A DNA stretch of 63,728 bases, filler included, from Octopus bimaculoides (GCF_001194135.2; 7 parts of 7 records of this genome joined end to end with filler, not necessarily neighbours in it), one strand, 5' to 3'. Positions 32,234 through 52,623 are shown, numbered from the whole stretch's first letter. A program made the numbers and translations. Notes: a model not told the origin generated them from the letters alone.

Positions 32234-33610
32234 TGTATGATGCATGTGTATGAACATCTATGCTTCATGGCAGTGAAACATGGGCCGTGACTGCTGAGGA
32301 CTTGCGTAGGCTCGCAAGGAATGAAGCCAGTATGCTCCTTTGGATGTGTAATGTCAGTGTGCATACTAGACAGAGTGTAGTACCTAGAGAGAAAAATTGA
32401 ACCTAAGAAGCACCAGTTGTGGTGTGCAAGAGAGACGATTGCACTGGTATNNNNNNNNNNGCCTCTCACTCAGAGTAAAAGGCAGACTGTATGATGCATG
32501 TGTATGAACATCTATGCTTCATGGCAGTGAAACATGGGCCGTGACTGCTGAGGACTTGCGTAGGCTCGCAAGGAATGAAGCCAGTATGCTCCTTTGGATG
32601 TGTAATGTCAGTGTGCATACTAGACAGAGTGTAGTACCTAGAGAGAAAAATTGAACCTAAGAAGCACCAGTTGTGGTGTGCAAGAGAGACGATTGCACTG
32701 GTATGGTCGTGTGGCAAGAATGGATGAGGATAGCTGTGTGAAAAAGTGCCACAGCCTAGCAGTTGAGGGAACCTGTGGAAGAGGTAGGCCCAGGAAGACT
32801 TGGAATGAGGTGGTGAGGCATGACCTGCAAACATTGGGTCTCACCAAGGCCATGACTTCCGACCAAGACTTTTGGAAATATGCTGTGCATGAGAAGACCC
32901 GGCAAGGCAAGAGAGAGCATAATTTGTGACCCTTGCCAGAAGTGTAGCCAGCTCACTAATTTGTATCTTTACTTCATTGGACACTTGCGAAGAGCTGTTG
33001 AGGCAAGTGAATTTGGAATTTGAAATCTGAAATCGAACCGAATCCGACGACTGGCACCCATGCCAACATCTCCTTCATTGGACACTAAACTCTGCTTGCA
33101 AAGACCTGTTGGGGCAAGTGAAATTGGAATCGTAATTGAACCATATTCGATGACTGGCACCTGTGCCAGTGGAGCATTAACAGTGCTGTCCGAGCGTGTT
33201 CATTGCCAGAGCAGCTGTCTGGCTTCCGTGCTAGTGGCCTGTAAATAGCACCATTTGAGCATAATCGTTACCAGCATTGCCTTCTAGCACTCGTGCTGGT
33301 GGTACGTTAGAAAATCATTCGAGCGAGGTCGTTGCCAGTGCCGTGGACTGGCTCCTGTGTAGGTGGCACGTAAAAAACACCTTTTTGAGCATGGCCGTTG
33401 CCAGGACCGTGTGACTGGCCCTCGTGCCGGCGGCACGTAGAAGCACCCACTACAATCTTGGAGTGGTTGGCGTTAGGAAGGGCATCCAGCTGTAGAAATT
33501 CTACCAGATCAGATTGGAGCCTGGTGCAGCCTTCTGGCTTGCCAGTCCTCAGTCAAATCGTCCAACCCATGCTAGCATGGAAAGCAGACGTTAAACGATG
33601 ATGATGATAA
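32234..33610 (+). mobile_element. RTE LINE 3' end plus tail; 32234-32450 duplicates 32488-32704
   Basis: SETWAV...RRLHWYGRVARM...GRGRPRKTW, followed by the repeated tail and (GAT)n. Confidence 0.9.
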
Positions 33611-34069
33611 TGATGGTGATATATACATACATGTTATTATCGAAAAGTTACAATAAGTGCTCAACACTGCATTGGTGGATAAATGTTCTTTATTCATGGG
33701 TTAATGAAATTACCATAGGTTTCGACCCCATTGTTATTAATAATAAAGATGTGCTATATTCGTTCTTCGTTTTCTAACTTGCACCATGTATGTGTGTGTG
33801 TAGCCTAGTGTTTAAGGTGTGGCACACACGATCATGAGCTCGTAATTTCGATTCCCAAAACGGCGTTGTGTTGAGTTTTTTGAGTCCGTCTCAAGGTGGA
33901 GAATGTTGGCCAAGCCAGTATGGTGTGGTATCATCCGAGAGCTGAAAGAATAAAAAGGATGCGCATTGTGATCAGCAGTGTGTAACAACACCTCATAGTT
34001 TTATTTTGTATATACATATATGTATGCAGGCAGGCAGGCAGGCAGGCATGCATGCATGTTTGTATGTAT

Positions 34070-34325
34070 TTATTTATTTGATCGTAATTTCTTATTTCTT
34101 TATTGCCCACAAGAGGCTAAACATAGAGGAGACTAACAAGGATAGACAAATGGATTAAGTCGATTACATCGACCCCAGGACGAAACTGGTACTTAATTTA
34201 TCGACCCCGAAAGGATGAAAGGCAAAGTCAACCTCGGCGGAATTTGATCTCAGAACGTAACGGCAGATGAAATACCGCTAAGCATTTCGCCCGGCATGCT
34301 AACGTTTCTGCCAGCTCGCCGCCTT
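34070..34325 (-). mobile_element. tRNA-derived SINE (second family), full length, with target duplication; tandem partial copies at 56935-57255 and a degenerate copy at 29169-29370
   Basis: The minus strand has B-box-like GAGATCAAATTCC and the core CTTTGCCTTTCATCCTTTCGGGGTCGATAAATTAAGTACCAG. tgatcgtaatt flanks both sides. Confidence 0.85.
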
Positions 34326-34743
34326 ATGATCGTAATTCATGTATAATTGTAAATATTATGTTATTTGCAGCATTCAGTTTTCCTCACTGGTTTCTGTAGC
34401 ATTAAGTCATGTTTGGGATCAATCTAATCTTTGTTTCTGTGTATGGTAAGACGAGACAGTCACAATCGGAATCTATCAACCTGCCAGAGACCACCCAGTT
34501 TCTATGACATAAATTTACTGTTTTAAAGTGACCTAAATTATAATCTACCGTCAAAATTCTTTGCTAATTTGTTCCAGACACCAACTTAACAATGAGAAAG
34601 TTATTTTATTAAATTTTTCATTATCTTAAAAATTAATTAAAACAAAGGCAGCATATGTTTACAGAAATATAGAAAGAAATGGGTTAAACCCGCAACTACA
34701 ATCCAGCGCATATAGCAGGTTTATTATGACTGTAAGGTAGCAT

Positions 34744-34975: not shown

Positions 34976-36291
34976 AGACGGATTTTAGTGTGTGCTGCAA
35001 TGTTGGTGTGATGTGGTAAATTTTGATGCGTTCTGGTGCACGTGTGGTTGCTCGTTTTAATGTCGTTTTCTGTAATGCTTGCCTTCGATTTCATCGATTT
35101 TGTGTTGTAAGTGTTTATAGCTGTGAGCATGGTTTTCATGGTGTTGGTGTTGTTTGTATTAGAGTTGGAAATGTCTTTGGGAGTTGTGTATCTCCCTGTT
35201 TTGTTGGTGTTTGCTTTTGGTCTTTTTTTGCTCCTCTTCCTCCTTCCTTTTCTGGCTATTTGCCATTCCTCACTACTTTCGTCTTCCAATGATAGTTCTG
35301 AGGAATCGGAAGGGGATAATGGCATGTTGTAAGCGTCTGTGTGTGTTTCTGTAAGTGGTTGTGTTGTTGTTTCCGTTGGTGTTGGTTATTTGGGTAAGGT
35401 GTATGCAATATAGGGGAGGGGGAATCAATTTTTGCATCTTCTTATGTTTTTCCTGTATTTTCCCTTCTTGGTGTTTTTCCAGGAGTTGTTTTGTTGTTGA
35501 TTGTTGGTGTTGTTTTTATTGTCTTTTGTGTTGAAGGTGGCGTGGGTAGCAAGGGGATTTTTTTCCAGGGTTTGGTATTGGTCGTTGTTGTTGTTTTTTA
35601 GATAGTTTAACCTATCTAATACAAGCCAAGGTTACCAAATTCACTGTTCAAAATACTTTCAAAGGTGGGCTAGTAATAATAAGTTCTACTAAGGAATTTT
35701 TATATAAATAGCATGAGACATTTTGGTTTTCTCCTCTCTTAAATTCCAGCCTTCCTTTAGTATTCCTGTTGTTTTCGATTGATGCATAGATATATGTTTA
35801 TATGTATGTATACTGTAAAGTGTTAATATGTATGTATAATATAATATATATATATTATAAAAATATGTTAGTGTTCTTTAATTTTTGAACGGTTTTGCTG
35901 CCATTTGTTTATGTAGCCTGATTTCTTTATCCATTAGTTTCTACTAAGACAGAGACACGAGTAAAATTAATAATAGACAAATGAAAATAAAACTTTGGAA
36001 ACAACCTAAAGGAAGATAATTGAAAAATACTTGAAAGTGAACGTGAGATCGTAATCACATAAAGTAAAGTAAATATAACAAATAATCCAGAATCCTTGTC
36101 CGGTATCAGATCGATCCCAAAATCTAATTAGTTCGTGTCAGTCAAGAGGCCAAATATTTTGAAAGTTTCATCTGAATTCATCCAACGGATCTTGAGATAT
36201 CTTGTCCACAGACAAACGAAGAAACACAACTTAAAACAATACCTCAACAACTGAAACCAATAAAAAATAATTAAAGAATACTAATATTTAC

Positions 36292-36380
36292 CACAGTAAT
36301 TCTTCATCATTGTATCATCAGCCTCCTTCAAGTCTTTGCAATCAGTATTCTCAAAACAATTCAGATATTTGGGATGGTAC
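36292..36380 (-). CDS. Cysteine-rich secreted protein, copy L, exon 5 (domain 2, second half)
   Basis: ttcttttctccag|G TAC CAT...TAC TGT G|gtaaat. The 89-nt exon enters in phase 2 and exits in phase 1, giving YHPKYLNCFENTDCKDLKEADDTMMKNYC. Confidence 0.85.
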
Positions 36381-37069
36381 CTGGAGAAAAGAACAAAATA
36401 GTAATAAATTTCTATAGGTGGAGGTATGGCTGTGTGGGAAGAAGTTTGCTTCCCAACCACATGGTTCGAAATTCAGTCTAATGTGCCACTGCATGGTACA
36501 TTGGTCAAGTGCCTTCTACCATAGCCGCAGGCTGACCAAAACCTTGTAAGTGGATTTGGAAGACAGAAGCTGAAAGAAGCCTGTTGTATAAATGTGTGTG
36601 AGTGTGTGTGTGTGTGTGTGTGCATTTCAGTCTGTGTTTGTCCCCCACTATTGCTTGACAACCAGTGTCGGTGTGTTTATGTCCCTGTAACTTAGCAGTT
36701 CAGCAAGGAAAGCCTGATAGAATAAGTACCAGGCTTAAAAATACAATTACTGGGGTTGATTCATTCAACTAAAAGTTCTTCAAGGCCGTCCACCAGCATG
36801 GCCGGTCTAACGAGTGAAAGATAAAAGATATATATTATTTGCACCATATTTTGTAGCATACAAGTTGAATATTTCAGACCAAAATTTAAAACCAAAAAAG
36901 TAAGTCAATGTGTATTCCAAGACAACTTTGGAGGACCAAACATTTCATGTGAAACAGAGCAGGATTTTAAAAGATAGTGATGAAGTTTGATTGCTTACAC
37001 TATATACTATGTCAACTTGTATGCCAGAGAATATGGCATGTATTCCATATTTCCAGTGGTACAGCACTT

Positions 37070-37560
37070 CAAAAGCCATGACAAAACTGCAGCTCAATCA
37101 AGAGCATGCTCATTGTTGTTTTTTAAACATCTGTGGTATTCTTTGCCCAGGGCCAGACCATCAATCAAGTGTTCTATTGTAATATTTTGAAGCATTTGAG
37201 GAAGAATAATCGGTGAAAACAACCTGATCTGTAGAGCATGAAGAATTGGATTCTTCATCACAACAATGCAACCTGTCACCGAGCTCTCCTTACATAGGAG
37301 TTTCTTGCCACAAACAACATGGTATCACTTCCACACCTGCCATATTCACCAAATTTAGCACCTGCGGACTTTCATCTTTCCCCAAGATGAAAATGCAGCT
37401 CAAAGGTCACCATTTTAACACCGTTGTCAAGATCCAGAGTGAATCACTTACAGAAAATTACTACCAAGCTGGATTTGAAAAATGGCAGTGATGCTGAGAC
37501 CTGTATATTGGTTGCGCAAGGCGTTGATGTTAGAACTTAGGTAGACAGGTTATTTTTTAT
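37070..37560 (+). mobile_element. Mariner transposase C-terminal fragment (second family)
   Basis: WILHHNNATCH...LPHLPYSPNLAPAD..FPKMKMQLKGHHF. Confidence 0.8.
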
Positions 37561-37695
37561 TAAATATAACTAGTCCAGGAACTGTGTGATACCATCTCTC
37601 ACAGAACAGTTAATAAAATTTAGTAATCTTGTATGTTACAAAGGAGAAGAGGAAACTTATTATTTTAGGAGTGTCTATTCATTTAAGACAAAGTA

Positions 37696-38739
37696 TCAGG
37701 TTATCCCATAAGTTCTGTCCGATTTTACCATTTTTAAAATTGAATGAAATTTAATAGTATTTTAAAGTGTCCAATGGAATTAAAAATTATTTTTATGCAT
37801 TTGTGTACATTTATACTAATTGAATATTATTTTACAGAATAATAGAATTAAAATTTCTTTGATTACAACACTTTCTAACATGGAAGTATCCAAAGAGCAT
37901 TTGAGGCACATAATGCTTTTTGAGTACAAAAAAGGAAACTCTGCAGCCAAAGCGACTTGAAACATACACTCAGTTTCCAGGAAAGAATGCTTGAATGAAA
38001 GAACTTGCAGAAGATGGGCTGCAAGTTTCAGAAGATGGGTTGCAAATTTCAAAAGTGGAGATTTCAGCCTTGAAGATGAAGATCAAACAGGACATCCTGT
38101 TCAGTGTGAGGATAAGCTCCTTGAGGCATTACTTGGAGAATATCCTCCATTATCAGTTGAAGAATTAGCAATAAAGCTTAGTTCAAACCATACAACTGTT
38201 CATCGTCGTCTTCATCAACTTGGAAAGGTTCCTAAACTTGAAAAATGGGTGCCTCATGAATTGTCCAAAAGCAACTGCCAATCCTGAGTTGACATCTGCT
38301 CTTCTCTCTATTCTCACGAATGAAAAATGGAGCTTTAGTGAATCAAAAAGCAGTGATGTTTCATCAGGACAGTGTGCAACTCCACACTGCAAAGATCAAA
38401 TCACAGAAGATCGAAGAGCTTGGTTGGGAAAAAATAACTCATCCACCTTATTCTCCCAACCTTGCTCCTTTAGACTACCATTTGTTTCGTAGTTTACAGA
38501 ATCATTTAGGGGACATAACTTTTGCAAGCCAGGAGGAGATCGAAACTGACATTTCAGAGTTCTTTGCTATGAAAGCAAAAGAGTTATACATTGATGGGAT
38601 TAAAAAGCTTGTAAATAGATGGAAGGAAGTCATAAATAATCAGAGAAAGTACATTGATGATTAAATTTCAATTAAATATAACATTTGATCTCTTGTATTC
38701 TTTATTCAAAATTCAGACAGAACTTATGGCATGACCTGA
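37696..38739 (+). mobile_element. Mariner element with both TIRs and TA duplication, defective
   Basis: TA|tcaggttatcccataagttctgtc...gacagaacttatggcatgacctga|TA. Translation: MEVSKEHLRHIMLFEYKKG...WVPHEL...HPPYSPNLAPLDYHLF. It has stops and a deletion removing the first catalytic Asp region. Confidence 0.95.
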
Positions 38740-39026
38740 TACATTACAACCATGACCCTCCCATCTATTTTTCAGACCCTGCTACCCCATGATTACAGCA
38801 CTCAGTCTGTGCTCTATTCATTGAGACCTTTATTTCACTGGCCCACTGAAAGAACTTCAATACCAGCAAGATCTCTATCAAATCACAATCTACTGCCTTA
38901 AAAGGGAAGGATACATGAAACGTGATGTTTTCAAGAAAAACATTAAAAGATTGCTGCTGTCTCAGATTGAAACAGTACAATGTGTTATGTGGCACTTTCA
39001 AACTGAGTAATTTTAAATAAACTTAC

Positions 39027-39111
39027 GAGCAGTAAGAACCATTATTCTTTATCATATCACTGTATACTTCAAGTTTGCATGCTACCACCTTAGTGAGTTC
39101 ACATTTACCCT
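39027..39111 (-). CDS. Cysteine-rich secreted protein, copy L, exon 4 (domain 2, first half)
   Basis: ttttatttttccag|AG GGT AAA TGT...TAC TGC TC|gtaagt. The 85-nt exon runs from phase 1 to phase 2, giving GKCELTKVVACKLEVYSDMIKNNGSYC. Confidence 0.85.
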
Positions 39112-39303
39112 CTGGAAAAATAAAATTAATTTAAGATCTCATGTTACAATTTAAACATAAACATAGTATTTTATAATATGATATTCTTTAGTCACTCTCA
39201 AAAGTCCCTTTAATGAAAAATTGTGGCTTTTTTTGTTTTGCTTTGTTTTTGCTTGACTTTGTTTTTTTCCTTTTGTTTTTACATTTAGATCTTTTGTTTA
39301 GAT

Positions 39304-39566
39304 CAATAGTTCTCCACTGGGGTACATATGACCCTTTGGTGGGGTCCACATAAGATTTTGTAGCTAAAATTTACATGCAATAAAGTGGTTATACTTTTAC
39401 AGTACACAAAATATTTTAACAATTTTTTTTTTAATACAGTTCCAAATAATATTTAATTATGAAAATATTGAAGGATTTTTTAAAACATTGAATGCTTAGG
39501 AGGGTCCATGCAAGTAAAATAGGGATCAAGGGGGCCCATTGGTAAAAAAATAATTGAGAAACCCTG
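39304..39566. mobile_element. hAT-type MITE with 8-bp target duplication
   Basis: GTTTAGAT|caatagttctcc...tgagaaaccctg|GTTTAGAT. Confidence 0.75.
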
Positions 39567-40979
39567 GTTTAGATGAAGTATTAAAATATATTTTAAACTT
39601 TCACTAAAAGTAATTCAATTTAATTCGATATTTTAACCATTTACATTCCACAATACAGTATTCATTTATGTGTATTTAGGCATGAGAAAGAAGCATGCCA
39701 AGAACTGATCAGAACATTATATATNNNNNNNNNNNNNNNNNNNNNNNNNNNNNNNNNNNNNNNNNNNNNNNNNNNNNNNNNNNNNNNNNNNNNNNNNNNN
39801 NNNNNNNNNNNNNNNNNNNNNNNNNNNNNNNNNNNNNNNNNNNNNNNNNNNNNNNNNNNNNNNNNNNNNNNNNNNNNNNNNNNNNNNNNNNNNNNNNNNN
39901 NNNNNNNNNNNNNNNNNNNNNNNNNNNNNNNNNNNNNNNNNNNNNNNNNNNNNNNNNNNNNNNNNNNNNNNNNNNNNNNNNNNNNNNNNNNNNNNNNNNN
40001 NNNNNNNNNNNNNNNNNNNNNNNNNNNNNNNNNNNNNNNNNNNNNNNNNNNNNNNNNNNNNNNNNNNNNNNNNNNNNNNNNNNNNNNNNNNNNNNNNNNN
40101 NNNNNNNNNNNNNNNNNNNNNNNNNNNNNNNNNNNNNNNNNNNNNNNNNNNNNNNNNNNNNNNNNNNNNNNNNNNNNNNNNNNNNNNNNNNNNNNNNNNN
40201 NNNNNNNNNNNNNNNNNNNNNNNNNNNNNNNNNNNNNNNNNNNNNNNNNNNNNNNNNNNNNNNNNNNNNNNNNNNNNNNNNNNNNNNNNNNNNNNNNNNN
40301 NNNNNNNCATCGACTTGGAAAATTCAATTGCCCTTTTGAAAAATTGATTCCAGTACCCCTAAAAAGATCGAGATGTCTCACTTAAAATAAAGATTCAGCT
40401 TGAAATAATGAGTGCTTTCAAAAGGCTCTCGGCTTCATAAAAAAGAAAAGAATAGGTAAGTATAACACTAAACCCCACTTTAACACAAAAGCCTGCTTTT
40501 TCATGCCCATTGCTGAGGGGGTGCACTGGATGGCACTAACTTCTTACTATTAAATGTTGCACCCTAAGATTTAGAAAATTCAGTTTACAAAAAATCTTCC
40601 TGCAATACAAATTAGTCCCCACCCAGAATATTCTGAAGCACCCACAAGCACCAAAGTCTGGCAAGAGGCCAGTGCTCCTTACTACTTGTAGAAATTGAAC
40701 ACATAGGTGAATCTTATTGTCCATAGCAGAATGAATGGAGACAGTGACACACAAGAGCCATAATGTAATCTGAGTAACCACATTTGCTAGATTAAACACG
40801 GTCTCTTACTTCATATGAGGGTCTATCAGCTACCATGATTTAGCTTTATTTTTATTAATGTCAAGCAAAATAAATATTCAATATATTAAAAGCTAATCAT
40901 ATTCAATCGAGAAAAAATTTTGAATACACATTATCTTACTCCACCTCTACCCTGCCAAAATCTTTTATTCCTTACTTAC

Positions 40980-41071
40980 TACAGGCATCGTGTGCAGCCA
41001 TAAATAGACCAGCATATCTTTGTAATTTGCAGTGAGACAGGATAAGGCACTTTTCAATATCATGGTAGACC
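40980..41071 (-). CDS. Cysteine-rich secreted protein, copy L, exon 3 (domain 1, second half)
   Basis: ttttctgtcttgtttcag|G GTC TAC...GCC TGT A|gtaagt. The 92-nt exon runs from phase 2 to phase 1, giving VYHDIEKCLILSHCKLQRYAGLFMAAHDAC. Confidence 0.85.
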
Positions 41072-41179
41072 CTGAAACAAGACAGAAAAAAACAATATAA
41101 CATACATACATACATGTGTGTGTGTGTGTGTGTGTTAACTGAACCTGATAAGCTAGCTTTCTGTAAGATGGCCATGAAT

Positions 41180-41690
41180 CTTTAAGTTGCATAGGGCTGT
41201 TCAGATTTGCTTATCAGTTGCTTGACCTTAACCATTTGAGTATGTCCCTGAATGGCTGATGATTTGTGCATCTCTGATCATGAGCAAGAGTAGTGAAGGA
41301 GCATCATAGCCATGTGTTGAGAGGAATTCTTTGGGGTTTGTATAATTCACCCCTGGAAACATGGGTGTTTCGTTCATCGATAGAGCCAATTATTGTTGGT
41401 TCCTTGGGAACAGTATCAGAAGGCATCAAGAAGAATATAAAATTAATTGGAATAGAGTGCCCAGTAGAAATGTTACAAAAAGTTTGCCTCCTTGGCACAG
41501 CCAGAATAATCAGGAAAGAATTAGATTGCTGAAAAGAACAAATAGCATGGTACTGTAGGCTGCAATTAGTAAGCCTGTTATGCATGCAAGACTCCAGGAG
41601 CTCCAACAAAACATGTGATAAAGAGAAAATAATAATGATAATAATATTAATGATAATAATAATAATAATAATAATGATAATAATAATCCT
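41180..41690 (+). mobile_element. 3' end of an RLE-type (R4/Dong-like) non-LTR element with (TAA)n tail; paralogous copy at 49070-49345 (-)
   Basis: PIIVGSLGTV...LQKVCLLGTARIIRK resembles the C-terminus of restriction-like-endonuclease non-LTR ORFs. A TAA-rich tail follows. Confidence 0.65.
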
Positions 41691-41759
41691 TTCTTTATTA
41701 GCCACTAGAACCCACAAAAATAGAAAGTGAGCTCTTCTGTCGTAAGAAGATGCAAGACC

Positions 41760-42340
41760 TCATACCACTTGAACAACTTGAAATAAACTCCAGGAACTTG
41801 AGGTATCAAATTGATGCCACACCCAACATATAGTCTGGACCTAGCTCCCTCAGATTATTACTTGTACCAACTCATGGCTCACTTCCAGCTCTCACAATGC
41901 TTTATCAACAATGAGGTTCTTTACTCTACTATTCTCATCCACATGCATCACATGGCTACACCAGGGCAGTCTTCTCTCTTGCACGCCACATCTAATTCCA
42001 CTTATAACCACTTTTTCTCTCAAGAAGCTTTGACTTTGTCATTCGTGCACACTAATGTTGCACATCCTGGAAAGCATATTAGCTTCATTTCTTTCAAGCC
42101 TTCACATGTCCTCTGCAGCTACAGCCCTGTTTCACTGCCATGTAGAATGGCTGTTCACACATAGGCATCATACTATCTGCTTTTCAGTCTGAGGAAGTGG
42201 CTCTTTTTTTCCAACAAAGGTAGAAGTTATCTGAACTTTACTCAGCCTATTCCTATTCTAGCAGCTAAGATCTCAGAACATCCACCTCCACTGCTGACTT
42301 GGTCATCTAGGTAATGGAAGTTGTCCCCTATACTAATTTT
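41760..42340. mobile_element. Mariner scrap (+) joined to an RTE 3' fragment (-)
   Basis: MPHPTYSLDLAPSDYYL, followed by sequence homologous to positions 60-430. Confidence 0.7.
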
Positions 42341-42866
42341 GGTTCAAATTGAAAGTGTGAAACTATTTTCACTTTCTAATGAAACCTCATCATTGTAGAG
42401 CAGTGTATTTCAAATAACTATAGCTGGTTGTTGAGATAACATAGAAAATATGTAGATGAAAATAAAGTTTATGTGGTAGGCAGAAGATTACTGAATCTCT
42501 TAATACCCTATGTGTCATAATCAGCAACTTAGTTTTCGAATGCATATGGAACATACATGCACACACACACACACACACACACATTCTCTTTTATACATAT
42601 ATATATCTTCATACAACCATATATTTATATATGCTTATATATATTGCATGCATTCTGTAAATACAGACTGTAAATAGAACACTGGAAATATTAAAACTTT
42701 TCTTAAATCCAACAAGTAATTTTTATGTTTTTCATGACTGAATTCCATCGATGGAATTTTGCATCTCTAGTCACAAATCAGCCCCTTCTTTATAAAAGGA
42801 ATTCAAAGAATTGTATAAGAGAGGGAACATAAATAATACCTGCGAATGCTTTTAAGATATTCTTAC

Positions 42867-42969
42867 CTACATATCTTCTCTTTACTATCCTTGGCTTCTG
42901 ACAAGTGTCTAAATTTCGACAGGCATTTCCCTTCTTGTCTACGAGAACACAAGGTGGATGCTTGGGCAG
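42867..42969 (-). CDS. Cysteine-rich secreted protein, copy L, exon 2 (signal cleavage site and domain 1, first half)
   Basis: ttcctttgaacactaatgattctgtag|CT GCC CAA...ATA TGT AG|gtaaga. The 103-nt exon runs from phase 1 to phase 2, giving AQASTLCSRRQEGKCLSKFRHLSEAKDSKEKIC. Confidence 0.8.
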
Positions 42970-43426
42970 CTACAGAATCATTAGTGTTCAAAGGAAGAAA
43001 ATTCAATAAGTGGTTGAAGAATTTGATTCAAATTGGTAGGTAATATATAAAGACAACAAAAAAGAAATCACATCAAAATTCCAATTGCAAGCTGTATTTG
43101 ATTCTTCTGTTTCACCATTGTAAATATGGTATTCTGCACATGAATATGTAGTTAAGTTTGGAAATATATTGTTATGTTATATTATATTATATAAGGCGCA
43201 GGCATGGCTGTGTGGTAAGAAGTTTACTTCCCAACCACATGGTTCCAGGTTCAGTCCCACTGTTTGGCACTTTGAGCAAGTTTCCTATAGTATATCCTCA
43301 GGCCAATTAAAACTTTATGAGTGGATTTGGCAGACAGAAACTGAAAGAAGCCTATCATATATACATAATTAAGATTCAGTTGATGTAAGTACTTTAATCG
43401 AGGCACCAAGCCAGATTGGTATAGTC

Positions 43427-43859
43427 TGTAGGGAAGTGGGCATACACCATTCTGCGTATCCCAATTCTTCAAGGAAGAAAACAGAACGCAGACTCTAAAC
43501 TAAAACAGCATAACAAATATTTATTACAGTAGAATTCTGCTCACACTGGGAGGGAATTCGATAGAATGTCGCCTTTTGGTTAGATGAGCCGCCATCAGTG
43601 AAGCTGCGTGGTTTGAAGTCTTTCCTCCTCTCTAGTTAACTATGTGGACTCATTGTAGAGTTGATGGAGAGCTGCTGTCGAGACGTCTAGCTTCCACGAA
43701 GTTCAGCAAGCAAAAGAGGCAGAGAGATGTGGGAACGCTTGAATGTTGGATGACCACGCATGCACATGAGGGACTTCCTGCATTCATTCCGGAAGACTAG
43801 TCCCTGCGCATGCGTGGATAAACTCTCCAAAATGGCGACTGGTATCAAATGCCACTATA
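43427..43859 (-). mobile_element. 3' LTR of the Ty3/Gypsy element
   Basis: On the minus strand the PPT GAGGGGGAGCC (43861-43871) precedes TATAG...CTACA termini, with an internal AATAAA near 43520. Confidence 0.7.
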
Positions 43860-44222
43860 TGGCTCCCCCTCGAGTGCAGAAGCACGAAAATGGAAAAATT
43901 GGAGTGGCGCCTGAGGCAAGATGTCTATCGAAACCACCCACAAGATGTGGCACAAATATATATAAAGAAAAATCGAAGAAATGATGTACAATAGTGAAAT
44001 ACATGCATGCAATGTACAAAAAGAATTGAGGAAAAAGGTATGCAAGGAATTGGGCAGTAAGTGCCAACTAGTGGAAAACTGAAATAGACAATGACAAAAC
44101 AACTGTGATGACAACTGTCCAGGAAAACTGGAATCACGTGATGTAAAAGTCTGATTTCTTTTTTTGAAAAGAAAAATGTTCAATAAAAAAACATTGAAAT
44201 TGTCCAATGAAGTTCAATAAAG

Positions 44223-46870
44223 TTAAATGTAAATAGTGTTTGCCAGTTTCTTTGGCCAGTGTACAGTTCGGCCAGACCTAGTAACATAGTATTTGTTCAA
44301 GGCAGGTTGCGACGACGAAGGTGGTGTTGTCCAAGGTGTATGTGTTGGTGATGGTGTTGGCAAAGGTGTGTGTAATGGGTCAAATGCGAGCATAACAGTG
44401 GTGTCAACGAAAGATGTAGGACCTTCAGCATAAGCTTTCTCTGTACGACCATTAACGTCAATTTTGAATACTTTCAGTGTGCAGGAAAGCACACGAAAGG
44501 GTCCTTTATAAGAAGAAACAAGAGGTCCTTTGGCAGAATCATCTCGAACAAAAACATGCGTCCAAGAGTCAAGATCTGATGGCACTTTAGAAGGTGGAGG
44601 TTGGTGTCGGGGACCCATAGGAGGAAGGGTAGAAGAATAACTGCGTAGTCGAGCGGCATAAGACTCTGGATTGAGAGACTGTGACTTGTCTGGCACCAAC
44701 ATCGCACCAGGCAATGCCAGTGTGGTACCATACAACAGCTCGGCGGAAGAAAAACCTAGGTCTGCTTCAACCGCAGTCCGAGATCCAAGCAGGACAATAG
44801 GAAGAAATTCAGTCCACGGCTGTGGATTCGGCGAGGCACGCAACGCGGCCTTAAGTTGCCTGTGGAATCGCTCCACCATCCCATTAGAAGCGGGATGGTA
44901 ACTAGTGGTGCGTATATGATTCACTCCCAGGATTCGTGATAACTCACGAAATAAAGTAGCTTCAAATTGTCGACCACGATCTGTGGTTAGGCTGGACGGT
45001 ACACCGAACCGAGAAATCCAGCCAGACACGAAGGCTTTTGCGACAGATCCAGCAGAAATGTCTGCTATAGGAATGGCTTCTGGCCAACGGGAGAACCGAT
45101 CGACACAAGTTAAAATATACGAGAAACCGCAACTCACAGGCCATGGTCCAACCAGATCAAGGTGGACATGGCGAAAACGGGCCTCAGGAGAAGAAAACTG
45201 TCCAAGTGGAGCACGAACGTGTCTATGGACTTTAACACGCTGGCACTTCATGCAAGAGCGTGCCCAAGAGGTAATCGATCGCCGCATATTGGGCCAGAAG
45301 AACCGAGCAGTAACAAGCTTTACGGCGGCAGAGATGCTCGGATGTGACAATGAATGAAGGGCATCAAAAACAGAACGTTGATGGTTCTCAGGTACTAACG
45401 GCCTTGGAGAACCGGTGGAGATGTCACATAGAATAGAGCCTTCAGCTGAAGGGAGCGGAAGATAGGCAAACTTACAAGAAATAAACTTGGGTGAAGTTAA
45501 ATCCAACTTCGATAAAGGTGGTTGATCCTGCGAAATAGCAATTAAGTCAATTGCTGCAGGAGAGGAAATGGAATTGACAGGGAGCCTAGAGAGAGCATCA
45601 GCTGGGACGTTTTCCATCGCTGGCACATGTCGAATGTCACCTGTAAACTGAGAAATATAGTCCAGGTGACGGAAAGCACGAGGGGAGAGTTTGTCTGTTT
45701 TAGAAGATAGGGCAAACGTAAGGGGCTTGTGATCAGTATAAATCACAAACTCCCGTCCCTCGAACTGGTGCTGAAAATGACGAACCGACAGAGAGATCGC
45801 TAATAGTTCACGATCAAAAGTACTATATCTGCGTTCGGCAGGCTGCAATTGGCAAGAAAAGAAAGCCAAAGGTTTCGTTTGATTATCTACGGTGTAGTGC
45901 AAAACAGAACCAACCGCAGAATCTGATGCATCCACAGATAAAGAAAGCGGAGCATCAGGAGCCGGATGTTTCCTGTTTCACTGACTCAAAGGCAGACAAT
46001 GCCACAGCTGAAAAAGTAAGATGGGCATCTTTTTTAGAATTGCCCTTCTGCAGCTACGTTAAAGGATCAGCTTGTCCGCACACCGGTTTATAAAGCGTCG
46101 ATGAAAATTAACCATACACAAAAAATGGCGCAGCTGACGCAAAGAAGTTGGAGGCGCGATGCGCTGAATGGCATCGAACTTAGCAGGAAGAAGTTTGATC
46201 CCGTTAGAATCAATATAGTGACCCAGGAATTCCAGGGAGGACTGCCTGAAAACACACTTATCATGGTTTATCTTTACATTATAGGCGCAGAGTCGCTGAA
46301 AAAGTTGCGACAAATGGTGGCGATGATTCTCTTGTGTATCACTAGCGATAAGTAAATCATCAACAGAAGCGAAGACAAAATCAAGCCCACGAACAACTTC
46401 ATCTATAAATCTTTGGAAATCTTTTGTAGCATTCCGCAGACCGAAACCCACAAAAAGAAATTCAAAACAGCCAAAAGGAGTAGTAATAGCTGTTTTTGGA
46501 ACGTCCTCCGGATTAACTGGAATCTGATGATATTCACGAATCAGATCAATTTTAGAAAAAATGGTACAACCATGTAGATTAGCTGAAAAATCCTGCAGAT
46601 TCCTAATGAGATAGCGGTCAGGCACTGTTACAGTATTAAGACGCCGATAGGCCCCCACCGGGCGAAAATCAGAATTCCCTTTTCGCGCCAAATGAAGGGG
46701 AGATGCCCATGAGCTGGTGGAGTGGAGTATCAGGCCGAGTTGAAGCATGTGTTCAACTCGGCCCTAGCCGTCTTGAGACAGTCAGATGCCAGACGCCGTG
46801 GGCGCGAAAAAACAGGCGACCCAATAGTTGCGATAAAATGGAGGGTGGAATGAATGGGCTTTGCCAGCCT
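44223..46870 (-). mobile_element. Ty3/Gypsy pol (RT, RNase H, integrase); 5'-truncated and defective
   Basis: RT motifs WASPLH, FSKIDL..EYHQI and SVDD (the YxDD tyrosine is lost). RNase H motifs [15 protein letters not shown] and TDHKPL. Integrase motifs HHCC, HLDLVGP, TDRGRQF and GMVERFH. There is a frameshift between RT and RH, and no gag or 5' LTR. Confidence 0.97.
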
Positions 46871-46895
46871 AAAAGTTATATCCACCAGCTGCATG

Positions 46896-47215
46896 TATGT
46901 GATCGTAATTTCTATATAATTGTAAATATTATGTTATTTGCAGTATTAAGTTTTTCTCACCAGTTTCTGTAGCATTAAGTCATGTTTGGGATCAATGTAA
47001 TCTTTGTTTCTCTATATGGTAAGACGAGACGATCACAATCAGAATCTATCAACCTGCCAGGTTCTATGACATAAATTTACTGTTTTAAAGTTATCTAAAT
47101 TATAATCTACCGTCAAAATTCTATGCTAATTTGTTCCAGACACCAGCTTAATAATGAGAAGGTTATTTTATTAAATTTTTCATTATCTTAAAAATTTATT
47201 GAAACAAAGGTAGCA
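46896..47215 (+). repeat. Direct duplicate of 34329-34690 (exon-like 75-bp segment plus MITE)
   Basis: Colinear, highly similar sequence from tgatcgtaatt to gaaacaaagg. Confidence 0.9.
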
Positions 47216-47938
47216 TTCCAGCCATGATCATCATCTTTTTTCTAGTATATCTAGGAATACTTTATGGAGAGCATATTCATCCATTTTCAAGGCAGTGAAA
47301 CTGAAAGGCAGGTCGAATTATATGTAAACGAGAGACGTGCAGCAAACTATTACACTCTCATATACAATCGATTACTGCATGCAGGGAGAGTGTAGTATGG
47401 AACATAAAATATATGGAAGCATTATATAACTGGAAGAGATTTGTCAGCCGTACTTAGTCAGGCTGCTGAGGATTGACTGCAGGGGACGAATGAGCAATCG
47501 CTCCTGGGATGCAGGTCTAAAGGGGTGCAACATTGCCTCTTGCTGGCTTATCTATCAGTTGAGATGAGAAAGCCAAAATTGCCGTTGCCTCCTAGCTATG
47601 CGACTGTTTGTCATAAATCTATTCAATTACACCTAGATTAAATCGAAAGAATACTGAACAATCCCCTAAAGGACGAACCGTTCGCACCTTGTCACAGGCC
47701 GTACACTGTGACACCGATCAAGGCAGCGTTAATGAACGACTCCGTCACCCAGCACTATATCACACATATATATTTATTTATCTATGTAAGCATCGGCAGC
47801 TGATAAAATTAAGTAGTAGACTGATATATATATATCGGAGTTGATACGATCGAATAAAACCTTCCAATGTGGGGTTCCAGCATGACCGCAGTCCAATGAA
47901 TGAAATCATTAAAGGAGTAAAATAATGAATGAACTTAC

Positions 47939-47990
47939 CCGCTACAAAAACGGCAACAACTATGAATAGTTTCAGCATACTGAAGTACAT
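47939..47990 (-). CDS. Cysteine-rich secreted protein, copy L, exon 1 (signal peptide)
   Basis: ATG TAC TTC...GTA GCG G|gtaagt gives MYFSMLKLFIVVAVFVA. The phase 1 donor matches the phase 1 acceptor of exon 2, producing ...FVAAAQA-STLC. Linkage across the Gypsy-containing intron is inferred. Confidence 0.7.
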
Positions 47991-48768
47991 AAGTTTTTCA
48001 CAAGGCAAAAGGAATTCAATCTCTCTTTGAAGAGAAGAAAGTAAGTGATGGTGTCATACTTAGATGATCGTATATATATATATATAGAGAGAGAGAGATT
48101 GATGAAAATTGTTTGTTCAATAAATGCATTTTAAAATAAAACCCCAAACAAACTTCACTAAATATTTGTCTGAGGATTAAATTTTATTGATTGTAAATAT
48201 TTACGAATTGCTAATAGGTTTTTCTGTTTGCAATACGTCGCTCAGAGAAACACAATAAGTGAAGTCTTTTCTCTTTCCTTTTTTAAATATTGTGTCTCGA
48301 ATATTATTTAGTATCAACTGATTGGTTGATATTTACACAAGTTTCAGTTTATAAATCAATAGTATACGTNNNNNNNNNNNNNNNNNNNNNNNNNNNNNNN
48401 NNNNNNNNNNNNNNNNNNNNNNNNNNNNNNNNNNNNNNNNNNNNNNNNNNNNNNNNNNNNNNNNNNNNNAGCACTCACAGGTATTATTTATGTTCCCTTT
48501 CTTATACAATTCTTTGAATCCCTTTTATAAAGAAGAGGCTGATGTGTGACTAGAGATGCAAAATTCCATCGATGGAATTCAGTCATGAAAAACATAAAAA
48601 TTTCGTGTTGGATTTAAGAGAAGTTTTAATATTTCTAGTGTTCTATTTACAGTGTGTATTTACAGAATGCATGCAATATATATAAGCATATATGAATATA
48701 TGTTTGTATGAATATATAAATATCTATAAAAGAGAGTTTGTGTGTGTATGTGTGTGTGTGTGTATGTT

Positions 48769-48802
<34 letters not shown>

Positions 48803-49430
48803 TGCACATATTTGTTCCTTATGCATTCGAAAACTAAGTTGCTGATTTTGATATATGGGGTATTAAATGATTCAGTAATCTTCTGCCTACCAAATAAACT
48901 TTATTTTCATCTACATATTTTCTATGTTATCTGAACAACCAGCTATAATTATTTGAAAAACCTTGCTCTACAACGATGAGGTTTCATTAGAAAGTGAAAA
49001 TAGTTTCACACTTTCAATTTGAACCAAAACTATGTAGGGGACTACTTCCATTACTTAGATGTCCAAGTAAGTTATTTGATCTTTTCTGCAATCTAATACT
49101 TTCCAGATTATTCTATCCGTGCCAAGGAGGCAAACTTTTTGTAACAGTTCTACTGGGCACTCTATTCCAATTTCCCTTAAATTCTTCTTGATGCCTTCTG
49201 ATACTGTTCCCAAGGAACCAACAATAATTGGCACTATCTTCACCTTCATTTTCTATAGCCAATCTATTTTGTATTTATCTATCTGTCCACCTTCAAGAAA
49301 TCTGAACAGCCCTATGCAACTTAAAGTTTCATGGCCATCTTAGAGAAAGCTAGCTTATCGGGTTCCGTTAATACACACACACACACACATGTATGTATGT
49401 TATATTGTTTTTTTTTCTGTCTTGTTTAAG

Positions 49431-49522
49431 GGTCTACTTTGATATTGCAAAGTGTCTTGTCCTGTCTCACTGCAAATTACGAAGATATGGTGGTCTATTT
49501 AAGGCCACAAAGGAAGCCTGTG
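49431..49522 (+). CDS. Cysteine-rich protein, copy R, exon equivalent to L exon 3
   Basis: ttttctgtcttgtttaag|G GTC TAC...GCC TGT G|gtaagt gives VYFDIAKCLVLSHCKLRRYGGLFKATKEAC. Confidence 0.85.
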
Positions 49523-50037
49523 GTAAGTAAGGAATAAAAGAGTTTGGCAGGGTGGGTGTGGGGTCAGATTATGTGTATTGCAAAGTTTTTGCCGATTGAA
49601 TATGATTAGCTTTTAATATATTGAGTATTTATTTTGCTTGACATTAATAAAAATAAAGTTAAATCATGGTGACTGATAGACCCTCATATGAAGCAAGAGG
49701 CCGTGTTTAATCTTGCAAATGTGGTTACACAGATTACATTATGGCTCTTGTGTGTCACTGTCTCCATTCATTCTGCTATGGACAATGAGATTCACCTATG
49801 TGTTCAATTTCTACAAGTAGTAAGGAGCACTGGCCTCTTGCCAGACTTTGGTGCCTGGGGGTGCTTCAGAATATTCCCAGTGGGGACTAATTTGTATTGC
49901 AGGAAGATTTTTGTAAACTGAATTTTCTAAATCTAGTGCCATCCAGTACACCACATTAGCAATGGGCATGAGAAAGCAGGCTTTTGTTTTAAAGCGGGGT
50001 TTAGTGTTATACTTACCTATTCTTTTCTGTTTTTCAG

Positions 50038-50122
50038 AGGGTAAATGTGAACTCACTAAGGTGGTAGCATGCAAACTTGAAGTACACAGTGATATGATAA
50101 AGAATAATGGTTCTTACTGCTC
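50038..50122 (+). CDS. Cysteine-rich protein, copy R, exon equivalent to L exon 4
   Basis: tcttttctgtttttcag|AG GGT...TGC TC|gtaagt gives GKCELTKVVACKLEVHSDMIKNNGSYC. Confidence 0.85.
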
Positions 50123-50935
50123 GTAAGTTTATTTAAAATTACTCAGTTTGATGAAGCCTGTCATCTGCTTCTTATATAAGCTTTTATTCACCAAAGCCTT
50201 ACAACTACCTGCTAATTATTAACCTACGTTTTCTTTATCCTCCTCCTCTCCACATCCTTCATCTCTCACTCAGACTCCTTGTCTCTTCTTCTGCCATGGT
50301 AATAAGCCAGTAAGGGAACCTTTATGTGGTCTTTTGACCTTCAAGTAATAGAAGCGAAATATCCTTAAAAATCACATTCTACTGCTTTTATAAAAGGCAA
50401 TGGCACATTGGATATTGTGATTCTAGATATATCCTTTTTGAGAAAATGCTGGAATAATCGTCAATAGAACAGCTTTGGATGCTGGGTACTTGATTAAAGT
50501 TGTATATACAAGCAGACAGATCATATATTGATCTGAACATGTTTTAACATAGCTTCCTAAAACTAATATACATGGATACTTGTGGTAGTAACACTCTGAT
50601 AACAGGATTATTAAATAAATTGAAATTTCAGTTCAGCAGACTAAAAAGGTGTTTGCCATCACAATATGGCTGAAGGGAAAGTGCCACATAACACATCGTA
50701 CTCTTTCAATCTGAGACAGCAGAAATCTTTTAATGTTTTTCTTGAGAACATCACATTTCATGTATCCTTCCTATTTAAGGCAGTAGATTGTGATTTGATA
50801 GAGATCTTGCTGGTATTGAAGTTCTTTCAGTGGGCCAGTGAAATAAAGGTCTCAATGAATAGAGCACAGACTGAGTGCTATATTTATGGGGTAACAGGGT
50901 CTGAAAAATAGATGGGAGGGTCATGGTTGTAATGT

Positions 50936-51208
50936 ATCAGGTTATCCCATAAGTTCTGTCTGAATTTTGAATAAAGAATACAAGAGATCAAATGTTATAT
51001 TTAATTGAAATTTAATCATCAATGTACTTCCCCTGATTATCTATGACTTCCTTCCATCTATTTACAAGCTTTTTAATCCCATCAACGTAAAACTCTCTTG
51101 CTTTCAAAGCGAAGAACTCTGAAATGACAGTTTCAACCTTCTCCTGGCTTGCGAAAATTATGTCCTTCCAAATGATTCTGTAAACTATGAAACAATCTAT
51201 CTTTTAAA
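50936..51208 (-). mobile_element. 3' remnant of the same mariner insertion as 37696-38739
   Basis: Reverse-complement match to about 38490-38741, in the same flanking context. Confidence 0.9.
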
Positions 51209-51792
51209 ATCCTGTTCTAATTCACATGAAATGTTTGGTCCTCCAAAGTTGTCTTGGAATATACATTGACTTACTTTTTTGGTTTTAAATTTTGGTCTGA
51301 AATATTCAACTTGTATGCTACAAAATATGGTATAAATAATATCTTTTATCTTTCACTTGTTTCACTCATTAGACCGGCCATGCTGGGGCACGGCCTTGAA
51401 AAACCTTTAGTTGAATGAATCAACCCCAGTAATTGTATTTTTAAGCCTGGTACTTATTGTATCAGTCTTTTCTTGCTGAACTGCAAAGTTACAGGGACAT
51501 AAACACACCAACACTGGTTGTCAAGCAGTAGTGGGGGATAAACACAGACTCAAACACACACACACAGATATATACACACATTTATACAACAGGCTTCTTT
51601 CAGCTTCTGTCTACCAAATCCACTTACAAGGCTTTGGTCAACCTGAGGCTATGGTAGAAGGCACTTGCCCAATGTGCCATGCAGTGGCACAATGGTCTGA
51701 ACCTCGAACCATGTGGTTGGGAAGCAAACTTCTTCCCACACAGCCATACCTGCACCTATAGAAATTTATAACTATTTTGTTCTTTTCTCCAG

Positions 51793-51881
51793 GTACCATC
51801 CGAAATATCGTAAATGTTTTGATAACACTGACTGCAAAGGCTTGATGGATGCTCAGGATAAATTGATGGAAAAATACTGTG
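51793..51881 (+). CDS. Cysteine-rich protein, copy R, exon equivalent to L exon 5
   Basis: ttcttttctccag|G TAC CAT...TAC TGT G|gtaaat gives YHPKYRKCFDNTDCKGLMDAQDKLMEKYC. Confidence 0.85.
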
Positions 51882-52623
51882 GTAAATATTAGTATTCTTT
51901 AATTATTTTTTATTGGTTTCAATTGTTGGGCTGAGGTTTTGATTTAAGTTGTGTTTCTTTGTTTGTCCGTGGACAAGATATCTCAAGAACCGCTGGATGA
52001 ATTCAGATGAAACTTTCAGGATGTTTGGCCTCTTGACTGACATGAACTAATTAGATTTTGGGATCGATCTGATACCGGACAAGGATTCTGGATTATTTGT
52101 TATATTTACTTTACTTTACATGATTACAATCTTATGTTCACTTTCAAGTCTTTCTCAATTGTCTCCCTTTAGGTTGTTTCCAAAGTTTTATTTTCATTTG
52201 TCTATTATTAATTTTACTCGTGTCTCTATCTTAGCAGAAACTAATGGATAAAGAAATCAAACTACATAAACAAATGGCAACAAAACCGTTCAGAATTTAA
52301 ATAACACTTTTATAATATATATATTATATATTATACATACATATTAACACTTTACAGTATACATACATACATCATCATCATCATCGTTTAACGTCCGCTT
52401 TCCATGCTAGCATGGGTTGGACAATTTGACTGAGGACTGGTGAAACCGGATGGCATCACCAGGCTCCAATCTAATTTGGCAGAGTTTCTACAGCTGGATG
52501 CCCTTCCTAACGCCAACCACTCANNNNNNNNNNNNNNNNNNNNNNNNNNNNNNNNNNNNNNNNNNNNTTAATTAATTAANNNNNNNNNNNNNNNNNNNNN
52601 NNNNNNNNNNNNNNNNNNNNNNN

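Follow-up and report, generated by a model that had tools for sequence, protein, structure and literature searches.

Introduction

In the phospholipase A2 (PLA2) genes of snake venoms, introns are more conserved than coding exons, and the non-synonymous and synonymous substitution rates, KA and KS, are about equal (Nakashima et al., 1993/1995, as summarized in PMC7285919), a combination long known, together with a conserved signal exon, from other toxin families too. Abrupt switching of exon segments has been described for three-finger toxins under the name ASSET, for accelerated segment switch in exons to alter targeting (Doley et al., 2008, cited in PMC7285919). Here we describe divergence resembling that of the PLA2 genes in a family of clustered, uncharacterized genes of Octopus bimaculoides. 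The genes lie in the readable piece (positions 32234-52523) of a 63,728-nucleotide stretch of DNA, hereafter the window, in which seven parts of the GCF_001194135.2 assembly are joined end to end with filler, and in the surrounding 76-kb locus of the chromosome record (CM046607.1 30395775-30472055, hereafter L002). The original prediction, made from the window alone, was that exons diverge faster than introns between two copies of a gene, mostly by amino-acid changes, and that hypervariable surface residues are carried on a fixed disulfide scaffold under positive selection.

As in the snake venom PLA2 genes, the octopus paralogues are clustered and encode a small, disulfide-rich and putatively secreted protein that keeps its cysteines; introns and the signal exon have diverged less than the exons of the mature protein, and KA and KS are about equal, both above the noncoding rate. 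Mature exons that outpace introns, KA near KS, and a conserved signal exon and cysteine framework are the features by which ‘accelerated evolution’ is recognized, and all are seen here. Unlike the PLA2 genes, the octopus family belongs to a cephalopod, is predicted to have an unrelated fold and is known from genes alone, in three partial copies, with the acceleration on one branch where this can be tested. Conotoxin genes share with it a molluscan origin, a conserved signal and cysteine framework, and variable residues between the cysteines. Conotoxins are released from a propeptide as short peptides, whereas the octopus mature protein has about 123 amino acids, 12 cysteines and a predicted helical structure, and is encoded by four exons; neither Pfam scans nor a phmmer search returned sequence similarity to conotoxins, and we draw the likeness as one of gene pattern and not of membership.

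If the pattern holds, this would be a family of secreted, disulfide-rich proteins confined to a cephalopod lineage, with exons that outpace introns as they do in venom, immune and gamete-recognition genes, and its product would be a candidate octopus effector or signalling molecule of recent origin. The family would also offer a tractable case, with five short exons and three copies, for an old question in toxin genetics, namely whether acceleration is purely selective or aided by mutation. The question is worth asking here because the synonymous rate, too, is raised.

Results

Two exons diverge faster than the introns around them

The readable piece contains a large inverted duplication whose two arms, A and B, align in 8 collinear blocks of 91-97% identity. 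Copy A is RefSeq LOC106868059, whose 143-amino-acid product (P0001, XP_014768658.1) matches the window exons at 100%; exons 1 and 2 and the RefSeq terminal exon were placed from this protein. The exons of copy B are carried by P0002 (A0A0L8FVY1, a truncated model of 104 amino acids) and P0004 (XP_052825450.1, LOC106880807). The arms and exons are as follows.

35801-42850, minus strand: arm A, with A-specific insertions at 36978-38481, 39126-40449 and 41545-42296
48470-52369 (aligned as 52369-48470), plus strand: arm B, with a B-specific insertion at 50150-50676
47939-47990, minus strand: A exon 1, coding part; signal peptide MYFSMLKLFIVVAVFVA, then a phase-1 intron; GTAAGT donor; exact match to P0001
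42867-42969, minus strand: A exon 2 (103 nucleotides); first three-cysteine unit; 16 nucleotides outside the end of the A/B homology
40980-41071, minus strand: A exon 3 (92 nucleotides); fast-diverging, 14/92 against B
39027-39111, minus strand: A exon 4 (85 nucleotides); nearly invariant, 1/85 against B
36292-36380, minus strand: A exon 5 (89 nucleotides); fast-diverging, 17/89 against B and 16/89 against C, a third copy described below
33931-33941, minus strand: A terminal coding exon of the RefSeq model (..ALG-stop), in a repeat insertion absent from C
49431-49522, plus strand: B exon 3; matches P0002 and P0004
50038-50122, plus strand: B exon 4; conserved AG/GT borders
51793-51881, plus strand: B exon 5; stop at 51890-51892 on read-through

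The coding exons thus measure 52, 103, 92, 85 and 89 nucleotides, with intron phases of 1, 2, 1, 2 and 1. In exons 3 to 5 of both A and B the AG/GT borders are conserved and the reading phases are consistent, the exon 3 acceptor being CAG in A and AAG in B.

The hand counts behind the original prediction proved exact. Between A and B, exon 3 has 14 differences in 92 nucleotides, 2 of them synonymous, with 10 amino-acid changes (including a split K/E codon); exon 4 has 1 in 85, a Tyr/His change; and exon 5 has 17 in 89, with 3 single-hit synonymous differences and 11 amino-acid changes. Every cysteine codon and every AG/GT site is kept, as had also been claimed. When the full arms were aligned and compared exon by exon and intron by intron, the faster divergence of exons was borne out. 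Exons 3 and 5 differ at 31 of 181 positions (17.1%) and the introns at 190 of 2985 aligned bases (6.4%; Fisher p = 1.4e-6), and the contrast persists when exons 3 to 5 are taken together (12.0%, p = 1.3e-3). The intron alignment takes in about 96% of the B sequence outside the big insertion; if half of the 107 B bases left unaligned are scored as different, intron divergence rises to 7.9% and the contrast with exons stays at p = 8e-5.

The divergence is also sharply bounded. The 100 nucleotides flanking exons 3 and 5 on each side differ at the ordinary intron level (5-9%), and none of 2,629 intronic 90-nucleotide windows reaches 14 differences, the maximum being 13; some of the most mismatched windows are explained by length differences in intronic (TG)n/(CA)n tracts. 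A mutational explanation through GC content, CpG or the transition/transversion ratio found no clear difference between exons and introns, and since GC and CpG are alike in both, there is no obvious mutational bias. One assembly gap falls within arm A:

39725-40307: gap of 583 N, within the A-specific 1.3-kb insertion (39126-40438) in A intron 3

The exon comparison is unaffected by this gap, because it lies inside the A-specific insertion and touches no exon. Together these comparisons confirm that the exon/intron contrast is real, where stated, beyond chance.

A third copy and the assembly of the cluster

The locus of P0004 contains a third version of the gene, C, which is encoded on the plus strand at a distance of about 38 kb from A. 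Three of its exons can be placed.

L002 10001, plus strand: C exon 1
near L002 12929-13031, plus strand: C exon 2
near L002 22190-22278, plus strand: C exon 5

C exons 3 and 4 are hidden by a gap of 5,699 N. Because C aligns to A at 88-92% identity, from upstream of exon 1 through past exon 5, and to B at 90-96% where both are present, we take it to be a separate copy, which gives the cluster at least three paralogues. The idea that B and C are parts of a single gene, divided between two scaffolds, was considered and rejected, since both can be read in intron 2 and near exon 5, where they differ by 5-9%. Searches with all exon peptides (tblastn) in the readable piece and the 76-kb locus recovered A, B and C and no other copy.

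Two runs of 100 N lie between the blocks of C, A and B, one at L002 24601-24700 and one at L002 62759-62858, the latter being the one that separates A from B in the window:

48370-48469: 100-N join; A upstream region on its left, B intron 2 on its right

We take such runs, from common practice, to be scaffold joins of unspecified length. At the left edge of the join stands the A upstream region, which is homologous to the upstream region of C, and at 48470 the homology of B begins, 16-18 nucleotides past the expected donor of B exon 2; the join is discontinuous, and its real length is far greater than 100 nucleotides. No second exon 1 or exon 2 was found in the readable piece by tblastn of each exon peptide, and B intron 2 stands at the gap edge; B exons 1 and 2 are therefore unread. 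The gap should hold B exon 2, and probably also B exon 1 and the remainder of the A upstream region. The order and orientation of the copies, including the inverted arrangement, rest on these 100-N joins. Of the original claim of two copies, the duplication itself stands, in its 8 blocks of high identity, while the count rises to at least three.

The same gaps have left their mark on the annotation. The RefSeq model of LOC106880807 (P0004) combines C exons 1-2 with B exons 3-5 over 56 kb (L002 10001-66281), across two 100-N joins and with gene A nested within it in reverse, and is probably a gap-caused chimera of C and B. In UniProt, two entries of the 2015 annotation have an identical 52-amino-acid product of exons 1 and 2 (P0005, UniRef A0A0L8H3W4, n = 2); one is copy C, and the other could be the missing B exons 1-2 on a separate scaffold. 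No contigs with the exact product of P0002 or P0005 were found, and an exact-sequence look-up matched the genome assembly only. RefSeq describes both LOC106868059 and LOC106880807 simply as ‘uncharacterized’, and no literature mention of the genes was found under their LOC, XP or UniProt identifiers. At the start of the readable piece, two stretches of 217 nucleotides (32234-32450 and 32488-32704) that are 100% identical flank a gap of 10 N (32451-32460); the pair is most likely an unmerged contig overlap, and so an assembly artefact and not a biological repeat.

Fast and nearly invariant patches alternate

With C available, exons 1 and 2 of A could be compared as well. Exon 1 differs between A and C at 3 of 52 positions, the intron level, and exon 2 is divided within itself, its first 48 nucleotides differing at 13 positions (27%) and its last 55 at none. 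The fast patches are thus the first 48 nucleotides of exon 2, exon 3 and exon 5; the nearly invariant parts are the last 55 nucleotides of exon 2 and exon 4, which pooled have a single difference in 140 and fall below the intron level (p = 0.001). This recalls ASSET, in which short exon segments likewise differ sharply while neighbouring segments and introns are alike, as exon 2 does in passing from 13/48 to 0/55. Unlike ASSET, the octopus genes give no sign of true segment replacement, and their changes cluster no more than their density predicts.

Exon 4 sits in a tract of about 0.9 kb of low divergence (4.5% against 7.1% elsewhere, p = 0.008). The original prediction had named gene conversion as an explanation of this exon's homogeneity that would undercut it; on checking, exon 4 was indistinguishable from the tract that surrounds it (p = 0.25), and its sameness may reflect constraint, local conversion or both.

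In exon 5, its flanks and intron 2, all three copies can be read, and changes unique to one copy can be counted.

Exon 5 (89 sites): 15 unique to A, 2 to B, 1 to C
Flanks around exon 5 (about 986 sites): 35 unique to A, 24 to B, 29 to C
Intron 2 (552 sites): 14 unique to A, 28 to B, 18 to C

At noncoding sites, the three copies show a star-like pattern. In exon 5, by comparison, 15 of the 18 changes map to a single branch, that between A and the other two copies, and 3 of 89 sites distinguish B from C. Relative to the flanks, the A branch is accelerated (p = 4e-6), and B and C are without acceleration (p = 0.6). Because of this concentration on A, with no acceleration in B or C, exon 5 records a burst on one branch and not a general hypervariability.

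Changes avoid the scaffold of a predicted helical, disulfide-rich protein

The protein of 143 amino acids (about 14 kDa) consists of a putative signal peptide and a mature part of about 123 amino acids with 12 cysteines. Its N-terminus, MYFSMLKLFIVVAVFVAAAQ, looks by eye like a signal peptide, which suggests secretion. The cysteines are spaced x7,x17,x8,x5,x15, then x3, then x7,x15,x8,x5,x14, and the inner intron of each half lies one residue past that half's third cysteine. Because cysteine spacing, intron positions and intron phases repeat in both halves, we read the protein as an internal duplication of a two-exon, six-cysteine module (exons 2 and 3, exons 4 and 5) with phase-1 flanking introns. 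Sequence similarity between the halves has been lost, BLASTP of the first half against the second giving no alignment.

An AlphaFold2 model built from a two-sequence alignment is all-helical, with six helices after the signal (predicted local distance difference test, pLDDT, 82; predicted template modelling score, pTM, 0.71), and a disulfide-stapled all-helical bundle is predicted. Foldseek found no meaningful match for this model in the PDB (best E 1.1, template modelling score at most 0.35), and phmmer against PDB sequences returned no relative (best E-value 1.1). Pfam gave no family at E≤10 for the 89-amino-acid fragments or for full-length P0001. An exhaustive phmmer search of 1.84 billion representative proteins returned only the family's own cluster and one further match, P0003, which we rejected as spurious, it being a translated tandem repeat of 1,071 amino acids with 14 weakly matching stretches. 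On present databases of annotated proteins, the family appears restricted to Octopus bimaculoides.

The mature protein differs at 29 residues, and these are not spread evenly over it. All 12 cysteines are kept, and changes fall on 3 of 48 positions that are hydrophobic in both copies and on 26 of 75 polar ones (Fisher p = 2e-4), so that polar positions hold 26 of the 29; charge is altered by 17 of the 29. In the helices, most changed positions point away from the hydrophobic face, exposure being judged here by residue type and helix periodicity. Of the originally proposed fixed disulfide scaffold with a variable surface, the scaffold and the bias of changes towards polar residues hold, as does the divergence of coding patches at about three times the intron rate; the part that attributed the variation to positive selection finds no support in dN/dS, the ratio of non-synonymous to synonymous rates (omega), as set out below.

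Codon comparisons

Non-synonymous (dN) and synonymous (dS) divergence were estimated for several parts of the gene.

Exons 3 to 5: dN 0.127, dS 0.157
Exons 3 and 5: dN 0.17-0.18, dS 0.25-0.29
Full-length A against the C/B composite: dN 0.12, dS 0.11-0.13

By pairwise NG86, YN00 and maximum likelihood, dN/dS was in every case at most 1.14 and mostly below 1. The original prediction had stated that it would be refuted by a dN/dS not above 1, and with pairwise codon methods this is what was obtained. In the pooled variable patches, the proportions of non-synonymous (pN) and synonymous (pS) sites that differ are 0.19 and 0.18, each about three times the intron value of 0.064, with a non-synonymous excess of p = 1e-8. 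For the whole mature protein, a comparison that involves no post hoc choice of patches, the non-synonymous rate of 12.1% is twice the 6.4% of the introns (p = 7e-4). Of the changes on the A branch of exon 5, 11 are non-synonymous and 4 are synonymous (omega about 0.5). At least two changes are found in 9 of the 31 changed codons; we considered multi-nucleotide events in the exons and dropped the idea, adjacent-site pairs numbering 8 where 6.6 are expected (p = 0.32).

Weighing selection against other explanations

On balance we lean towards episodic, selection-driven divergence of exposed residues, giving one paralogue a changed binding surface after duplication. The copies would have arisen by duplication, with the intron divergence of about 6%, star-like among the three, accumulating since. 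Exposed polar residues in the N-terminal part of exon 2, in exon 3 and in exon 5 would have been replaced at about three times the intron rate while the cysteines, the hydrophobic positions, the second half of exon 2 and all of exon 4 were held fixed, and a burst in exon 5 would have fallen on the branch between A and the other two copies. The cause would be episodic selection during the neofunctionalization of a secreted ligand, effector or toxin-like protein. What we propose is a known phenomenon in a new, uncharacterized gene family without relatives, and it falls short of proof.

Several observations weigh against this proposal. Across regions and methods dN/dS is about 0.7-1.1, close to 1 and not above it. 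Synonymous sites in the variable patches are themselves in excess over introns (0.18 against 0.064, p = 0.006), and the A branch of exon 5 has 4 synonymous changes where 0.46 would be expected at the flank rate (p = 0.001); a raised synonymous rate is not predicted by amino-acid selection alone, although few sites contribute to the excess, which shrinks once multi-hit codons are excluded. The introns serve as a neutral standard by assumption, the branch separating A from B and C cannot be polarized without an outgroup, and the data are two to three partly assembled copies from one fragmented assembly, in which only two copies are available for the comparison of exon 2, and likewise of exon 3.

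One competitor is that one copy is decaying, or has had its constraint relaxed, and that the excess over introns reflects chance or constrained introns. A dN/dS near 1 would fit this, but the rate is above that of introns (p from 1e-6 to 1e-8), the reading frame, the 12 cysteines, the hydrophobic positions and all splice sites are intact, and introns that span about 3 kb and are rich in repeats are unlikely to be constrained. We favour selection over neutral decay because the rate exceeds that of introns, the exon borders are sharp and the scaffold residues are spared, and we hold decay to be very improbable. We are, if anything, more sceptical still of an assembly artefact, in which the ‘copies’ would be divergent haplotypes or misjoined contigs of fewer loci and the comparison allelic or chimeric. 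The region is built of short contigs, with the C, A and B blocks parted by 100-N joins, a perfect 217-nucleotide duplicate on either side of a 10-N gap, and a LOC106880807 model that joins C exons 1-2 to B exons 3-5 over 56 kb. Two haplotypes, however, cannot yield three versions, and three can be set side by side in intron 2 and near exon 5, where they differ pairwise by 5.4-9.2% and carry differing kb-size insertions; even with two of the versions allelic, the exon/intron contrast would hold.

Greater weight attaches to two explanations that address the synonymous sites. If the paralogues were older, at about 20-25% divergence, gene conversion could have homogenized the introns and the conserved exon parts to about 6% while the variable patches escaped, converted variants there being selected against. 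Such a history would account for a synonymous divergence of 0.18-0.29 in the variable patches, well over that of the introns, for the low-divergence tract around exon 4 (4.5% against 7.1%, p = 0.008) and for the near-identity of B and C in exon 5 (3/89). It sits poorly with the introns, whose divergence is fairly even (4.5-7.1%) and without a 90-nucleotide window at the exon level. The 100 nucleotides beside exons 3 and 5 show no old divergence, and conversion tracts would need to end exactly at four exon borders; several kb-size insertions differ between the copies, implying that the introns evolved independently, and the noncoding site patterns are star-like, not mosaic. We consider homogenization unlikely.

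Divergence edges that coincide with exon borders could also be the work of exon-aimed mutation or segment replacement that alters whole patches regardless of codon position, by short-tract or complementary DNA (cDNA)-templated conversion from an unseen diverged copy or by ASSET-like switching. Segment switching in toxin exons is on record (PMC7285919), and in the octopus genes an omega of about 1 at three times the intron rate, synonymous sites included, goes with very high local density, at 13/48 in exon 2 and in the 9 of 31 codons that changed more than once. Against it, cysteines and hydrophobic positions are spared, for which selection is needed anyway; adjacent-site clustering is no greater than expected (8 against 6.6, p = 0.32), and neither the 1.84 billion representative proteins nor the 76-kb locus yielded a donor paralogue. 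We judge exon-aimed change to be unlikely as well. A compound version, in which coding patches change as blocks through exon-restricted mutation or templated replacement (RNA- or cDNA-templated repair, targeted hypermutation) and selection then filters for scaffold integrity, seems to us distinctly improbable. Because the synonymous rate is raised, we keep both older exon patches and an exon-restricted process in play beside the episodic selection that we favour.

Gene ends, repeats and a neighbouring gene

The 3' end of the gene can be read in two ways. When exon 5 is read through its donor, GKY-stop follows in all three copies, GGTAAATATTAG is kept after exon 5 in each, and the unspliced exon would end the protein as ..CGKY; in B, the gene ends at window position 51892 (L001 6099). 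In the RefSeq model of A, coding continues to the terminal exon listed above. The sequence around that exon (A 33879-34627) is missing from the downstream region of C, and A 33799-34026 matches a repeat in C intron 1.

Both borders of the 1.3-kb insertion in A (39114-39125 and 40439-40450) align to the same A-rich stretch of about 12 nucleotides in B (50023-50034), and the repeated stretch may be a target-site duplication left by a transposon. Degraded fragments that resemble a mariner transposase lie within the intron insertions specific to A. One of them weakly matches, under the curated cut-off, the helix-turn-helix domain of the Mos1 transposase, and the other carries a ‘PTYSLDLAPSDYYL’ motif recognized by eye. 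Short interspersed repeat families with 78-96% identity between copies occur in introns, in the intergenic region and in C intron 1, and intronic microsatellites vary in length between the gene copies.

37961-38284, plus strand: mariner-like transposase fragment
41802-42161, plus strand: mariner-like transposase fragment
36416-36478, 43194-43256 and 51694-51757: interspersed repeat
33461-33640 and 52341-52522: interspersed repeat
34327-34654 and 46900-47216: interspersed repeat
36596-36625, 41115-41140 and 42556-42585: (TG)n/(CA)n microsatellites

Beyond the cluster, a neighbouring gene on the minus strand (L002 74718-76281) encodes a ubiquitin-specific protease of 512 amino acids with zf-UBP and UCH domains, and appears unrelated.

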